Shown here piece after piece: positions 5,362-58,639 of a DNA stretch of 64,000 bases (positions are counted from its first letter, which is position 1; each line of letters opens with the position of its first letter). The stretch is from Octopus sinensis. Its lineage: Eukaryota. The stretch spans positions 66,774,001-66,838,000 of the forward strand of contig NC_042999.1 in the NCBI RefSeq assembly GCF_006345805.1, in the 5' to 3' direction. A program made the translations under genes and the position numbers. The notes under the pieces were generated by a model, which saw only the letters and a list, made by a program, of their open reading frames with translations, ran no database searches and was not told where the DNA came from.

Positions 5362-5437
5362 CATTGAAATAAACAAGTGATAAACAACTCGGAATGTATT
5401 GTATTTGTGACAGCTTGGCTTAGGATTCTTATATAAG
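5362..5437 (+). promoter_or_regulatory. Promoter cassette of peptide gene A (CATTGAA, TGATAA, TGACAGCTTGG, TATATAAG)
   Basis: cattgaaataaacaagtgataa at 5362-5383, tttgtgacagcttgg at 5404-5418, gattcttatataagagca with TATA at 5430-5437; same motif order at 19953-20040 and 26203-26278; GTAAGT donor follows at 5481. Confidence 0.75.
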
Positions 5438-5457
5438 AGCATTGTTACCTTCTACAC

Positions 5458-5480
5458 CACATACGAAGAAGCACTTACTG
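5458..5480 (+). other. Non-coding exon 1 of peptide gene A (start approximate)
   Basis: Begins about 25-30 nt after the TATA box and ends at CTG|GTAAGT (5481); same layout at the two paralogous promoters. Confidence 0.6.
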
Positions 5481-6595
5481 GTAAGTTTCATTCTTCCTAT
5501 CTTCATATCTGTATTTATATTTTACTGTCTCTCTATGTATCTTTCTGCTTGTCTCTGTCTGTCTCTATCTATCTATCTATCTATCCATCTATCTATCTCT
5601 TTATCTACATCCTTTATTTTCTTTAGTCTTTAGACTGCAACCCTAGCAGTTTAACATAAGCAGTTCGCCCACACTACTGAGCACCAGACTAACTGCATCC
5701 TTCTCAGTTGCCGAATTGTTAAATTACTGTGACATAAATAAACCATCTCTGGTTATCAAGTGTTGGTGCAGGACAGACAAAACACACACACACATTTCTG
5801 TGTTACATGCAGGGCTTCCTCACCATTTCCTTATTCACCAGAAATGGGGCGGTGGCCCTTGGGTATTGTAGGATACCCTTTCCCAATTAATGCAGTTGAC
5901 TGAACTCGAAGCCGTGTACTTCCAGAGCTACAAGTCTTCAATGAACGAATATCCAGATTTATTGTATTTATTTTGTCAGTAATGACTATAGATTATGTGA
6001 AAATCCACTAATACGGATCGAATGTCATACACAGACTAGAGAAATTGAGTACACCTTTGCATCATAAACCCAAGTTATATCTAGAGCTTCGGGGATAATT
6101 TGAAACAGAATCTAGGTATTCTGGACGTACTTCAATACTTATCGCGTTTTAATATGTGACCCGTCTATTTAGAAATATGTGTTTGACATTCATATCAGCA
6201 ATGACGTGGCGAGAACGTTAAATGTTTCAAGTTCAGTGGAAGTAAAGTTAGTCAGTTTCTGATACGTTATTAGTATGAAGGAATCCCCGGAGATACGTAT
6301 ATAGAATTGCTGGATGCAATTGTTAAACATGCTGTAGAGATATATAACAAACTGCATGAATGTCAAATGATAAGAAACCACTGTATAAGAAAATATAAGT
6401 GACAAACATATTTCAAGAAGTTACTTGTTACTCCAGTTGGTTGTATAAGGTTATATTTAGGGGCTCATATACCCGCGTTTGGATGTAGATTTAAGATATA
6501 TGAAGTAAACAGATCTGCCACAGATGTTAAAGTAGCGACCATATTATGTTGTAAATAAGTAAAAAATGGTTACATAAGTTCTATGTACACACGAG

Positions 6596-8230
6596 GCACT
6601 AAATTTCATTTTTTATTTTGTTGTTAAATACATGTAGACTTCTGATTCCTGCCACATTTCTGATGCTAATTTCCAATCCGATATCTAAGTACCTCTAATC
6701 ACGTCCATACTTTCTGTAACCGATAACCATTTTTCATTTTTTTCCTGCCGTTTCTATTATGAAAGCCATCTAAACGGCTTTTCCGTGTTACGTTTTATGA
6801 TAAGTATACTTAGATAATTAGTAAACATGAATGTCTTTCCCCCTTTACTAAGGAACTTCCTGTTTTTAAGTGAAACTTTGGTGTTTCCTTTTCCGTTGTC
6901 CCTTGTAGGTTGACATGAATCTCTCTCTCTCTCTCTCTGCAGGAACCAACAAGAATCTCCTATCATATTTAGGTTGAAATTATGTTGGTATCTGCTTTCC
7001 ATAACTGAGATCTGTTGGTCTACGCGCTTACCATGCTCGTCACTTACCACTCGACTGTAGGTCGGAAAGAAGATGAGAATGTAAAAAAAGCATTTTCAAA
7101 GACATTCTGTATCCCAAGTTTTCTTAATATTTAAGCATACTTTCTACGAGTTCACAATTGGTTTTAGTTTTGGAAATTTCAAGAAGATTTTTCACAGAAA
7201 TGTTGAGTCGTTGATTACATTGCGAATCTGTGGTCCAATGAAAACTCCAGCTTCTAGCTTAGCAACTGCCAATATTCCTTTGAATTTATCCTTTCGATAT
7301 TAGAATCTTTCGGAAATTTTTCACAAGATCAAGTTGAATGTGAAATGGTGGAAGATGTACTTTATGAAGGTCAGTAAGTGCTGAGCTTTTCATATTGTAT
7401 TTACCAATAACATGTTTAGCTCTAGTTGGCTAATCATGTTTCTGGAGAAGTTCTTGTAATTACTGCTGTCCCATAGACACAAAAACGCATATGTTTTGTG
7501 TAGACCAACTATAACCCAAAAAGTAATGATACAATTTTAAGGTCGACACATTATTCTAAATACAATCTTTATACTTCGTGAATCTTAGCAGCAGTTCGAT
7601 TGTGCAGTAATGCTGCTTCAAGCCTAGCTTTAAAAGAGTCAATGAACATTCACCATTCTTTTCAGACATAGCGAATGTTAAATCCTTTCGTTCAGACCAC
7701 TGAAGTCGTGGCAGAAAGAAACGTCTTCGTCCCGTATGTGATATGATGGAAACTGCAAATGGCGATGGCGTATACGGGAAATTTGGCGCTTGGTTGGAGA
7801 AGATTCCATTCTTGAAATCTGGAACCAAGCAAGTCTGCCTCTCAATATTAGTAACTTCTCTTGACCAATCTCAGGAAGTATTGACATCTGGAACATATAG
7901 GCCATCTATCTCTATTTCTACATTACTATCAGAATCTTCAGATGAACTCCTCTCTGTTGCTGTTGCTGGTGGAGCGGGTGGTTTCATCATGTGATACCCG
8001 TTTTATTGCTGATTTGCAATTTGAATAAAAGATTTAATGTATTAGTTTCTTTGAGACTTAATATTTGTCAAACACAAACCATATTCATTGATGTGGTTTT
8101 GCAGCTTACGCAAAACCCTAGGGATTGAGATCTGCATAGCTTTCTTTTACTGTTCATCCAGGCTATTAACAACGAATTGCATTGTGCACGGCAATATGTG
8201 GATCCCAGTTCTACTTTTGTTGTCCTAACT
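6596..8230 (-). mobile_element. Degenerate DNA transposon, Chapaev3/CMC-like transposase relic, in intron 1 of gene A
   Basis: Minus-strand translation with stops contains HLPPFHIQLDLVKNF and VSDEHGKRVDQQISVMESRYQ, resembling LPPLHIKLGLMKNF and SDEHGERFHQDI..ME.RYQ motifs; family assignment from memory. Confidence 0.55.
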
Positions 8231-8562
8231 TAATGTTAAAATAATATTTGTAGGTAAGTTTAATGTTTGTGGATATGTTTCTCAGATGTATATTGTTTAT
8301 AGATATAGCAGGAGCTGTCCATAGTATATATATACTAATACAATTGTTTGTTTGTATTCCACCTGCCTTCGTCTTTTGTTTATTTTCATAAAGCTTCTAG
8401 TTATACACACACACACGCACACACACACATATATATATATATATATATATATATATATATATATATATATATAACTAATGTAGGATAAAATGTTTTTGGA
8501 GAAAAAAATGTTATCAATGGCCTGCATATCAAAAAATTCCTTTAAAGGTTAAATTCATAAAC

Positions 8563-56555: not shown

Positions 56556-56899
56556 ATATGTTCATTGTAAATTACAACAACCACTTATTGTTCTTAAGTT
56601 CATTGACGAAATTCATTTAAATTTTAAAATAAATGAGAATAATTGAAATGATAATTATTGAATAAATGCAATTTTCTGTCAATAACGTGTTATAACTAAT
56701 AGTTCAAATCCAGAAAGCCCAATGAATAATGTGTGAGGCAGATAAAGAATTCAAGTTAGAAATTTGTGGGAAGAGATATGCAATGGTAAAGAGTTGTTTT
56801 AAACATAATAAAGGTTGTAAGTTAATCTCTGCGATAGAAACAGCTTGATGACGCTTTGGAAAACAGATATGACAAAAGAAGAATTCTGAAGTTACAACC

Positions 56900-57365
56900 A
56901 GGTGTACTGACCGTGAACAATAATTTTAAAAGAAAATTATATTTTTCAAATTTTAGAATTTTCTAGGTGTCACTGTCGATTTTTCTGCCGACGAAATCAT
57001 ACATACGAAATGCATCGTGATCGGTATTTCGAGTGTCTGAAAAATAAATGTCTCATCCGATAGTTGTAAATTGTCTTCAAAGTACTCAACAAAAGGAACA
57101 AAATGATTTCTGATATTAAAATCAATAATTCTAAGCAGAAAAGCGCGACCATCTGCTCAGCGGCTGTGAGGAGAAATCATTGAATCACTATCCGTGAGTT
57201 ATCAGAGGATATGCAGATTAGTTACGGTTCAGTTCATTATCAGTGAAGATTTGGGTATGAGAGGCGTGCACCAAAACTGCTTTCAGCTGACCAACAAGAC
57301 ACTCGGGTTTCAGTTGCACAATATCTCCTTGATTGTGTCGGAAACGATGAAAACTTTTTTTAAAC
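56900..57365 (+). mobile_element. Mariner N-terminal fragment inserted upstream of exon F
   Basis: ITIRELSEDMQISYGSV..SEDLGMR..D..TRVSVAQYLLDCVGNDENF remnants. Confidence 0.7.
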
Positions 57366-57670
57366 TTTTCGTAGGCATATGAGCAGGTATCGCCAAGTTT
57401 TTGGCAACATTTGAAGTAGATTCTCTGCTGAACTTACTCTCTCGTGGCCAATTCGACAATCACACGCTACACACCTTCCTTCCAAGCACTGCTGCAAAAC
57501 AGTGGAATTGAACTAGAACGTTAGAACTTAGTGCACTTGCATATCAGAGTTTGAGGTCAATCTGTGCCAAGCGGCTTTGCATTGCGTGCTTCGTTACTAT
57601 GGCAACAGTCTGGATACTTATTGATCAGACTACGTATATAAAACAATGATTTATTCTATTCTAAACTTTG

Positions 57671-57777
57671 TTCTTACTCTACGGCTATGTCTAAAGACTT
57701 GCCGACGACTACGTAGATACGATCCAACTTCGGTTCCGTTTAGAGAGTGTCTGAAGGATAAATGTAACACTTCGTAA
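57671..57777 (+). pseudogene. Orphan terminal exon F with mutated acceptor: (V)LTLRLCLKTCRRLRRYDPTSVPFRECLKDKCNTS
   Basis: Intact C-x3-C-x15-C-x4-C with the first Cys 17 nt into the exon as in D and E, but the acceptor position reads ctttg| instead of ttttag|; AATAAA 57841; homologous 3' flank. Confidence 0.6.
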
Positions 57778-58639
57778 GATTTCAAGTATATACGAAAACA
57801 TTGTAGCCTTTCATTGTTTTAAATTTTTGTCAATGCGCGGAATAAAGCAACAAAGTGATTTCAGATCTGAAAACCGATAACTCTAAACAGAAAAGACAAA
57901 GGGGCTGCTGAAATTTCGCATTGCCACTTGACAGCTCACCGGATCATATTTCGGAAGATGGATATTTTTTTCTTTGCTGTGTAAAACCCTTACTTATCAC
58001 AACAAATATATCACACACTACGAAATCTGTGATCACATATTTGTGTGATGGAATTATTTCATTTTTAATTACTTGAGGCTGATGATGACTAGTAAATTGG
58101 AAAGTTGCTAAAGCGTAGTACGAATCCAAGACGTTTTAAATAGTTGAATCAACCGCGTTTAGTGAGATTAATTCTACTATAAAGAAAGAGTAAACAACCT
58201 ACTAATATAATTTTGTTTTCACTAACTTATTATACAATTCAATAAGTTAAACATACTGCTTTAGTGAAGAGAAAAATCATTTTCTACTTGACTAATTCTA
58301 CACAGAATAGTGAACTCCACAATGTTAATTTTGTTTCGCCTTTCTTATATATATTTTACGTAGTGTAGTGTAATCCACTGATATGCATCCCGTTTCCCTG
58401 CTAAAACTGCATTTGTATGTTGTGAATGGACCACTGAATTTCGAGCAATTGAACAAAACATTATTGTTTAATTTAAATTATTTAATTTCAATATGATTAT
58501 AAGAAGAAAAGAAAGAAAATCCACTATAGAGACTTATATATACGGTATTACTTATTCTGGGTATTCCTCACTAAAGGAATATCCTCGCTTCATACATCAA
58601 TTAAGCAACTAAATTACTAGCCGTCAAATTTCGTTCTAT

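Follow-up and report, generated by a model that had tools for sequence, protein, structure and literature searches.

A tandem array of genes for putative secreted cysteine-hairpin peptides on chromosome 3 of Octopus sinensis

The question raised by a 64,000-nucleotide stretch of chromosome 3 (C3) of Octopus sinensis (C3:66,774,001-66,838,000, hereafter the window) is whether the short cysteine-framed open reading frames (ORFs) scattered along it belong to one gene family and what that family makes. An earlier note on this DNA had read positions 5362-57846 as a cluster of six parallel genes for secreted helical-hairpin peptides of an unnamed family, possibly toxins or antimicrobials. We found that the window is the right-hand end of a single tandem array of about 215 kilobases (kb). 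The explanation that we consider best, and probable, is that this array encodes small, mostly cationic secreted peptides that diversify on a fixed scaffold, in a family so far known from the species pair O. sinensis and O. vulgaris only.

Every module named in the earlier note was found again in its place, on the plus strand, by a six-frame scan, and one further module, X, was absent from its list. The modules of the window are the following:

10962-11048, plus strand: module 1 of A, CPFDC-x18-CNQEHC (six-frame scan)
11052-11126, plus strand: module 2 of A, CRYMC-x15-CAAGC (six-frame scan)
exon from 32407, plus strand: variant of C, LHLTLC-x12-C-x4-CC
38377-38454, plus strand: D, CETFC-x15-CLIKRC (six-frame scan)
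from 53817, plus strand: E, CNDSC-x15-C, with three Cys only and Ile at the fourth position
56974-57051, plus strand: X, CRFFC-x15-CLKNKC (six-frame scan)
57688-57765, plus strand: F, CLKTC-x15-CLKDKC (six-frame scan)

The strict framework (no stop, no extra Cys, six frames) has five matches in the window, all within family exons, and 100 block shuffles produced a mean of 0.07 and a maximum of 1. An nhmmer profile of the exon plus its flanks recovered A, D, E, X and F with E = 1e-44 to 1e-58, and added as members of the same family C (32379-32599, E = 2.8e-16) and a minus-strand copy, B, at 22484-22227 (E = 4e-7), which was likewise missing from the earlier list. The terminal exons are paralogues at the DNA level, with a common yTAATTTTAG acceptor and a GATTTCAGATATTAAAAGCAATAATTTTAAAC block about 60-130 nucleotides (nt) past the stop, and this homology together with the shuffling result bears out the claim of a real paralogous family. 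The claim of a common cysteine framework stands for A, D and F and fails for C and E, each of which has lost one framework Cys. Microsatellites of the TG/CA type (5109-5255, 15231-15323, 34757-34853, 42011-42141 and 52440-52538) also give long spurious Cys-rich ORFs in several frames and are a trap for scans of Cys patterns.

The complete genes follow one plan, with a TATA promoter and a short non-coding exon 1, a signal-peptide exon, an intron and a single terminal exon. In the window, the parts of two such genes, A and C, and one promoter relic were located as listed here, a slash marking the splice junction:

5362-5480, plus strand: promoter and non-coding exon 1 of gene A, with TATATAAG at 5430-5437 and a donor GT at 5481
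8956-9023, plus strand: signal-peptide exon of gene A, with acceptor ttttacag, ATG at 8963 and donor G/GTAAG (nhmmer E = 1.5e-31)
10948-11200, plus strand: terminal exon of gene A, with the coding sequence ending at 11129, the stop at 11130-11132 and the 3' end estimated at about 11200
19948-20114, plus strand: weak promoter/exon 1 relic (nhmmer E = 1.3e-9; blastn)
26181-26364, plus strand: promoter and non-coding exon 1 of gene C, with a TATATAAGAGCA core as in A (E = 8.5e-54)
31336-31403, plus strand: signal-peptide exon of gene C, with ATG at 31343, MNSTFCLVMLGLFIITAGAN and a phase-1 donor G/GTAAGT
32407-32543, plus strand: terminal exon of gene C, a variant, GDSVALHLTLCRQRYTNSLDIYKCMADNCCKYAPLHEIKQENDFG, with the stop at 32541-32543 (nhmmer E = 2.8e-16)

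The signal exon measures 68 nt, has the acceptor ttttacag and 7 nt of leader before the ATG, ends in phase 1 (G/GTAAG) and codes solely for the signal peptide, MNS(T/I)(F/L)x(L/F)(I/V)...LTE (consensus MNSTFFLIILGIYMM-ALTE), a hydrophobic leader of 20-21 amino acids (aa) on an exon of its own. Small residues occupy positions -1 and -3 of the likely cleavage site (TEA/G, ANG/D, TIG/A, here with the slash at the cut), and the start, the hydrophobic core, these small residues and the phase-1 donor are kept in at least nine signal-exon copies. After an intron of 1.0-2.4 kb, the terminal exon, behind the yTAATTTTAG acceptor, supplies the entire mature peptide together with a separate poly(A) signal. 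Most copies have the hexamer no more than about 70 nt from the stop, typically about 25-30 nt before the conserved block, which is therefore read as the cleavage/downstream region of the poly(A) site.

In gene A, AATAAA is found 41 nt past the stop, followed by the conserved AGCAATAATTTTGAA block, and the mature peptide carries eight Cys in two hairpin-type modules linked through C-K-C. Its promoter/exon 1 region (5362-5500) is 75% identical to 26203-26342, with a common GATTCTTATATAAGAGCA core. A promoter profile built from the A and C copies found eight copies in the 264 kb examined, and the O. vulgaris gene model CAI9719438 uses the equivalent exon 1 donor of a neighbouring paralogue and has a signal-to-mature junction identical to that of A. 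In the peptide of gene C the first framework Cys is gone and the loop is shorter by 3 residues; its signal exon is the last of the array, and all copies rightward lack one. Leader exon, acceptor, terminal exon and poly(A) block are all present in A, C and the upstream paralogues A', A'', g-54, g-69 and g-81, and B, D, E, X and F have only the terminal-exon features of the family. The proposed arrangement of signal exon, phase-1 intron and hypervariable Cys-framed exon thus holds for A and C and not for B, D, E and F, and the six parallel genes reduce to two complete ones, C being a degenerate variant, and to copies of the terminal exon.

The array extends well beyond the window. A degenerate 33-nt signal-exon pattern with up to 3 mismatches, run over the whole 2.7-gigabase genome, matched at nine places, all in C3:66,616,652-66,782,989 (control, 0); together with the signal exon of gene C and a pseudo-exon at -31978, both missed by the pattern, the signal exons total 11. 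Mature exons reach 66.83 megabases (Mb), and a whole-genome search placed the 8-Cys exon at no genomic location outside this array. Since the signal-exon matches are confined to one locus, the mature exons continue to 66.83 Mb and the 8-Cys exon occurs only there, these elements form one array of about 215 kb, which is about four times larger than the span of the earlier note and lies mostly upstream of the window. In the 100 kb examined on each side, no family member was found downstream, and many further members (signal exons, mature exons, promoters) were found upstream, where positions are given as negative numbers in window numbering:

-13619 (signal exon) and from -11673 (mature exon), plus strand: A' (flank scan)
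-3410 (signal exon) and from -1458 (mature exon), plus strand: A'' (flank scan)
-20549, minus strand: 8-Cys mature exon (GELAC exon, the -20.5 kb copy)
-54758 (signal exon) and -57192 (mature exon): g-54, with 8 Cys
-69795 (signal exon) and -71886 (mature exon): g-69, with the module CREKC-x19-CFYDKC
-81359 (signal exon) and -83202 (mature exon): g-81, with the module CLKEC-x19-CTNKC
-31978: degenerate signal exon, ATG changed to ACG
-39504: degenerate signal exon, donor and acceptor mutated
about -114 kb and about -157 kb: two candidate signal exons, from the pattern match

A' and A'' form a 10.2-kb tandem pair. A 100-N gap of the O. sinensis assembly at -17211 to -17112 (locus L010) stands in for about 8 kb of O. 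vulgaris DNA, where an intact 8-Cys exon (GVLACRYDCKTELK...) is accompanied by a signal exon and a promoter of the family. A genome DNA search with exon X returned only X itself, by a search type too insensitive for paralogues of 75% identity, and Rfam gave no match within the window.

The remaining copies in the window consist of the terminal exon alone or of its relic:

22351-22457, minus strand: B, with an intact acceptor, VKVKYRHYYMKIHLQNGDPGDCTEFLKCLYDHRQ, 2 Cys and an A-like 3' region
38360-38556, plus strand: D, with an intact ctaattttag acceptor and a phase-1-compatible ORF
53800-53900, plus strand: E, with an intact acceptor and an AATAAA that overlaps the stop
56957-57063, plus strand: X, with an intact acceptor, (E)FSRCHCRFFCRRNHTYEMHRDRYFECLKNKCLIR, 5 Cys and a net charge of +5
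57629-57777, plus strand: F, 0.5 kb past the X poly(A) block, with the stop at 57775-57777
58714-59082, plus strand: relic unit G, upstream-intron homology retained, exon lost

An 8-sequence nhmmer profile and the promoter profiles were negative for signal exons and promoter copies from 32.6 to 64 kb and on the B strand, and own signal exons for B, D, E, X and F were not recovered by tblastn, by 2- and 8-sequence nhmmer or by a generic scan (ATG, hydrophobic stretch, phase-1 donor). The candidate 'MPLLILPRLLILIASLN' (28119, 47152) was rejected as part of a dispersed repeat, and 'MNYNNHSLFL...' at 37958 is not conserved among paralogous units. The repeat in question is young and present in high copy number, with two copies in the window (27728-29070 and 46761-48128, 92% identical), at least 1,807 candidates in the genome and copies on many chromosomes that are 96-99% identical; its short hydrophobic ORF mimics a signal exon and is unrelated. 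F and D were also considered as single-exon genes starting at ATGs 57648 and 38326. This reading was discarded: a TATA-like string lies just 9-16 nt before the ATG, the 'leaders' are not signal-like and the ATGs are not conserved in E or X.

D, E and X, as well as the relic G, have about 0.4-1 kb of upstream intron in common, and D, E and F about 0.4 kb of downstream sequence. The X unit begins 1.4 kb past the end of the E unit and F follows X still more closely, with too little space in between for 5' exons, and given these short spacings at least those duplications copied the terminal exon alone. Acceptor, open phase-1 frame and poly(A) hexamer are retained in D, E and X, AGCAATAATTTTAAA poly(A) blocks are present in D, E, X and F, and in D, X and F all four framework Cys have survived a nucleotide change of about 40-50%. 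Exon-only copies that bear such a signature of selection must have been spliced to an upstream signal exon, and the only one available to D, E, X and F is that of gene C at 31336-31403, on the same strand and in the same phase. From this we infer, tentatively and with some doubt, that the C transcription unit uses D, E, X and F, or did so until recently, as alternative terminal exons. In the case of F, an upstream AG at 57627-57628 would preserve phase 1, and its use as an acceptor is a possibility.

O. vulgaris has a parallel layout, in which a promoter, a signal exon and a GVLAC exon are followed 4.5 kb on by the GELAC exon, without a second signal exon; in the O. sinensis assembly, the 100-N gap takes the place of all of these but GELAC. 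The O. vulgaris model CAI9719436 joins that signal exon to the distal exon. The two candidate arrays (C, D, E, X and F behind 31336-31403 in the window; GVLAC and GELAC behind one O. vulgaris signal exon) would exemplify a general arrangement, somewhat more doubtful in our view, in which hypervariable terminal exons, each ending in a separate poly(A) site, share one promoter and one signal exon and exclude one another in the transcript. If this were true, one transcription unit could give rise to a whole set of different secreted hairpin peptides, as a constant-5'/variable-3' mirror image of protocadherin- or UGT1A-type clusters. To our knowledge, a one-promoter array of alternative terminal exons has not been described for toxin or defence peptides.

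The manner in which the copies have diverged carries much of the argument. D, E, X and F are 84-90% identical in the upstream intron and 75-82% in the 3' block, against 40-63% in the 78-nt core coding sequence (Cys to Cys, gap-free), where the nonsynonymous divergence (dN) is 0.58-1.32 and the synonymous divergence (dS) 0.25-0.91. Among the complete genes, dN amounts to 0.07-0.51 in signal exons versus 0.26-1.16 in mature exons, and the 150 nt of intron before the acceptor are 73-93% identical where more than 90 nt align; A and A' are 93% identical in the intron, with dN 0.26 and dS 0.52 in the mature exon. The peptide-coding segment diverges several-fold faster than its non-coding flanks, and Cys and frame persist. 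Judged by these sequences, such a pattern is the hallmark to be expected of diversifying effector families, and decay would give the opposite.

O. sinensis and O. vulgaris split about 2.5 million years ago (PMC10700109). The O. sinensis region matches the O. vulgaris loci L022 and L023 at 97-98% identity, in a comparison that covers the window up to 25.7 kb. Between the species, the mature exons differ at 1 of 183 nt in A (one synonymous and no nonsynonymous change in its terminal exon), 0 of 168 nt in g-54 and 1 of 195 nt in the -20549 (GELAC) copy; the signal exon of A has no difference, and introns differ by 1.5-1.8%. The two differences in the 546 nt of A, g-54 and GELAC compare with about 9-11 expected at a neutral divergence of about 1.6-2%, so that these mature exons are about 5-fold more conserved than introns, which indicates purifying selection on them. 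A' and A'' show 4-7 differences, all nonsynonymous, 4 of which are common to both paralogues within a species, and no between-species substitution hits a Cys. Because species-specific amino-acid states are common to the two paralogues, gene conversion across the gene body is suggested, and the changes point to relaxed or positive selection. The A'/A'' duplicates (-14300 to +6200) are 98.2% identical over the 4.8 kb with the exons and 91-95% elsewhere, and the O. vulgaris pair is 96.9% identical. B is 100% identical to O. vulgaris over 381 nt and lies in an 837-nt run without differences (22129-22966), the longest in a 6.6-kb block with an average divergence of 1.6%.

Database searches returned relatives in O. 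vulgaris only, both in word-indexed searches of 5.8 billion clustered proteins and with phmmer against 1.84 billion representative proteins, where three matched: CAI9719436, CAI9719437 and CAI9719438 (UniProt A0AA36EYX7, A0AA36F004 and A0AA36F1J9). All are 'hypothetical predicted protein' entries and neighbours on OX597816.1 at 70.17-70.27 Mb, a locus syntenic with the O. sinensis array, and are true orthologues or paralogues. A Pfam scan of eight members gave no family match at E up to 10, PDB sequence profiles of both forms found no chain at E up to 10, and a literature search by accession, peptide strings and octopus plus Cx3C retrieved nothing relevant, so the three proteins are undescribed. 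CAI9719438 contains the spliced 81-aa precursor of gene A at 100% identity, and hence the splice junction predicted for A is the annotated one.

All three O. vulgaris models (L023:10001-56468, L023:1926-9262 and L022:10001-26306) are chimeric, with exons of neighbouring paralogues joined, some of them out of frame. CAI9719438 begins in exon 1 and the signal exon of A'', read out of frame, CAI9719436 runs from its signal exon to the distal mature exon and on to further exons 30-40 kb off, and the 5' exon of CAI9719437 is unrelated. In both species the locus calls for re-annotation by hand. As far as annotated proteins show, the family is so far limited to the O. vulgaris/O. sinensis pair, and no other annotated proteome gave a match, small ORFs being often unannotated. 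The earlier suggestion of lineage specificity reaches only as far as the annotated proteins do, among which all relatives are from O. vulgaris.

The mature peptides, of 33-65 aa, consist of one C-x3-C-x15-19-C-x3/4-C module or of two modules fused via C-K-C, with 8 Cys. In the 8-Cys form, the eight Cys and E-H-C-K-C-R-Y are invariant (junction ...EHC-K-CRY.C...). Across paralogues, the Cys do not vary and the remaining residues are 25-40% identical; 11 of 13 peptides have a net charge of +2 to +7, and that of E contains four N-x-S/T sites. AlphaFold2, run for A with an alignment of A and four paralogues, predicted helices at 9-15, 22-32, 34-43 and 49-57, that is, two hairpins (mean predicted local distance difference test score, pLDDT, 77.6). 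For X, with an alignment of X and seven single modules, AlphaFold placed a helix at 3-13, a loop and a helix at 20-30 (pLDDT 79.6). C-x3-C belongs to helix 1 and the third Cys to helix 2, just past the end of which comes the last Cys. The helix-loop-helix fold is thus supported as a prediction, for single- and double-module forms alike. The third of three non-significant Foldseek matches of X (E = 8.2) was a 38-residue chain of the walnut Jug r 2 (vicilin) entry, with a template-modelling (TM) score of 0.59/0.54 and a root-mean-square deviation of 1.5 Å over 27 columns. We take this chain to be the alpha-hairpinin-like vicilin leader peptide, a reading of our own informed by PMC7191063.

These observations lead to the following scheme. 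The leader would direct the peptide to the secretory pathway and be cut at about TEA/G, and each module would then fold into two antiparallel helices stapled by C1-C4 and C2-C3 disulfides, the pairing found in alpha-hairpinins and kappa-KTx (PMC7191063). The released peptides may act on non-self targets, either as membrane-active host defence or as ion-channel-directed components of saliva or venom. The array grows by duplication of whole genes, as in the 10.2-kb A'/A'' pair, and of the terminal exon only, and after duplication the mature segment diverges much faster than the adjoining intron and 3' region, with Cys and frame kept. A role as toxin or antimicrobial is plausible by analogy, most likely either in a membrane-active or fungal-wall-binding host defence of the alpha-hairpinin kind or as channel-directed peptides of the saliva, like kappa-KTx and the helical framework-XIV conotoxins. 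The earlier interpretation is in sum partly supported: it was right in kind about an unnamed, secreted, fast-evolving family of helical hairpins, with matches by neither sequence nor fold beyond the three hypothetical O. vulgaris models, and its function is a prediction.

Several points weigh against this reading as a whole. The structure models derive from alignments of 5-8 paralogues and are of moderate confidence, Foldseek against PDB gave nothing significant for the A or X model, the C1-C4/C2-C3 pairing is assumed by analogy, and C-x4-C is not the classical same-face spacing. The raised dS in mature exons is not explained by selection alone, the counts between species are small (8 nonsynonymous against 1 synonymous), and the three chimeric models could come from ab initio prediction instead of RNA, the O. 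vulgaris annotation being built from Iso-Seq and RNA-seq assemblies together with ab initio predictions (PMC10700109). Other points concern the window half of the array. C has lost its first framework Cys and E its fourth, B is down to 2 Cys, the canonical acceptor AG of F is mutated (taaactttg), the ORF of gene C reads through its AATAAA region to the stop at 32541-32543, and that of D passes through AATAAA and adds a 33-aa basic tail after CETFC-x15-CLIKRC. With these losses in C, E and F and with ORFs of C and D running into poly(A) regions, part of that half may be decaying. The same facts would suit an alternative, on balance improbable, in which function is confined to the complete genes (A, A', A'', g-54, g-69, g-81 and the GVLAC gene) and unequal crossing-over left B, C, D, E, X and F behind as dead by-products. 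It fits with B, D, E, X and F having neither promoter nor signal exon, with the lack of a protein for any of B, C, D, E, X and F in the databases (5.8 billion clustered proteins in the case of C, D, E, X and F), and with decay being known in the array from two degenerate upstream signal exons and the exon-less relic G. Yet neutral decay should make exons diverge as much as their flanks, hit Cys codons and introduce stops (at an estimated 7% or so per codon with this base composition), whereas D, X and F retain four framework Cys and a phase-1 frame that stays open up to a stop about where one is expected, with cores 51-63% and flanks 84-90% identical. An exon-only duplicate would be under such selection only if it were spliced to an upstream signal exon, and B lies inside the longest difference-free run between the species.

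A different use for real secreted peptides, in reproduction or chemical communication (gamete recognition, egg-coat or seminal proteins, water-borne pheromones), would fit the evolutionary pattern equally well, judging by analogy, and we regard it as unlikely overall. Conserved leader and untranslated regions, a hypervariable mature region, restriction to one taxon and the nonsynonymous-only changes of A'/A'' are the same signature. Molluscs have Cys-stapled helical pheromones (Aplysia attractin), the PMF pheromone genes of plethodontid salamanders combine conserved untranslated regions with a hypervariable coding sequence, and reproductive genes, too, form fast-evolving tandem arrays with conserved untranslated regions. 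Nothing speaks directly against such a role, but a strong cationic charge and a twin-CX3C hairpin are more typical of antimicrobial peptides and channel toxins (PMC7191063), and Pfam and PDB gave no attractin-type similarity. That the ORFs are untranslated, the Cys pattern being an incidental property of a non-coding RNA or repeat array such as TG-rich sequence, is highly improbable: TG/CA microsatellites of the window do give many spurious Cys-rich ORFs and RefSeq-type proteins are absent for most copies, but the framework matches are not low-complexity and are 70 times commoner than in shuffles, Cys stay invariant where other residues are 25-40% identical, the leader-exon features recur in at least nine copies, and A, g-54 and GELAC are more conserved than introns. 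Hardly more credible, and if anything less so, is an intracellular twin-CX3C protein of the small-Tim/CHCH kind (mitochondrial intermembrane space) misread as secreted. As far as we know, twin CX3C with 11-16 residues between the halves in a helix-loop-helix is the small Tim hallmark; the octopus spacing is 15-19, with C-x4-C frequent as the second half-motif, the N-terminal hydrophobic leader, of classical type, has its own exon, and Pfam gave no match to Tim10/DDP or CHCH at E up to 10. A hypervariable, single-taxon, tandemly arrayed family is also unlike the housekeeping small Tims. Secreted peptides diversifying on a fixed scaffold thus remain the reading that we prefer.

Several other features of the window were recorded. 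The segment 12030-14821 is absent from the orthologous O. vulgaris DNA and contains 674-bp inverted repeats (12147-12820 and 14524-13851, 99.7% identical), in each arm of which there is a faint remnant resembling a signal exon ('MNRTFF', nhmmer E = 0.19). A foldback-type insertion or an artefact of assembly may account for the segment. A 1.75-kb unit is tandemly duplicated at 48735-52318 (48735-50567 and 50488-52318, 98.4% identical), in the most AT-rich part of the window. An interspersed repeat occurs in both orientations, 75-91% identical, at 18660-19390, 35728-35906, 42760-43575, 56139-56548 and 62630-63970, and one of its copies interrupts the stretch of intron homology immediately before exon X.

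For small peptides, the catalogue of cephalopod saliva and immune effectors is poor, and the array would add an unnamed family with more than 10 loci that annotation has missed or mis-joined. It would also add an independent animal invention of the disulfide-stapled helical hairpin that plant defence, scorpion and cone-snail peptides use, and its unusual fused 8-Cys double hairpin would interest peptide engineers and students of convergent evolution. As a natural experiment the locus is compact: whole-gene and terminal-exon duplication, gene conversion and coding divergence that outruns the flanks can be seen in it together. If exon-only copies were used as alternative terminal exons, this would be a new route to a peptide repertoire from one promoter, and the alternative-exon array would then sit atop a new animal family of single and fused double CS-alpha/alpha hairpins.

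Among known systems, the plant alpha-hairpinins (EcAMP1, MBP-1, MiAMP2c, VhTI, BWI-2c, Luffin P1, Tk-AMP-X, Sm-AMP-X) resemble the octopus family in having four Cys and two antiparallel helices. They have the framework C-x3-C-x4-20-C-x3-C, a signal peptide, often cationic charge and multi-module precursors, and serve in defence as antifungals and trypsin inhibitors (PMC7191063, PMC11591084). The 4C motif rule, C-X3-C-X4-20-C-X3-C (PMC11591084, Table 1), fits module 2 of A, A', A'', the -20.5 kb copy and g-54, as well as g-81; it fails in D, X, F, g-69 and every module 1, where the second half is C-x4-C, and C and E are short of one Cys. Two antiparallel helices with a loop, the structural mark of alpha-hairpinins, are present in the AlphaFold predictions. 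Unlike alpha-hairpinins, the octopus peptides are encoded by an animal three-exon gene instead of a plant vicilin or cassette precursor cut by proteases, their modules are fused by a single residue (C-K-C) without the linkers of alpha-hairpinin precursors, and they have no sequence similarity to them, although solved alpha-hairpinins are in PDB. Convergence is by far the likelier source of the resemblance, compared with homology.

The twin-CX3C helical hairpin, paired C1-C4/C2-C3, recurs in secreted venom peptides, in the scorpion kappa-KTx (kappa-hefutoxins, OmTx) and the Conus framework-XIV toxins (flf14a-c, vil14a), the latter using the CS-alpha/alpha fold in mollusc venom (PMC7191063, PMC11722136). 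These toxins measure 22-28 residues with loops of 4-11, as against 33-65 residues with 15-19 between half-motifs in octopus, and phmmer and PDB profiles revealed neither sequence similarity to kappa-KTx or Conus peptides nor a conotoxin-superfamily signal sequence. We know of no 8-Cys double-hairpin form in the kappa-KTx or framework-XIV families. The small Tim and other twin-CX3C mitochondrial proteins are alike in their helix-loop-helix and differ from the octopus family, which has a secretory leader, is hypervariable, occurs in one taxon and has no Pfam match. Judged by sequence, membership in the named families fails, and for most modules it fails on the second C-x3-C half-motif too.

In its manner of evolution the family is closest to the conotoxin superfamilies and the mussel myticins, in which the signal region is conserved, the mature region evolves at an accelerated rate around invariant Cys, and expansion is in tandem, the pattern measured here. 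Framework and sequences are unrelated to theirs, and the octopus mature peptide and its poly(A) site lie on one exon. Unlike in conotoxins and myticins, this terminal exon was duplicated by itself, giving one signal exon followed by several terminal exons.

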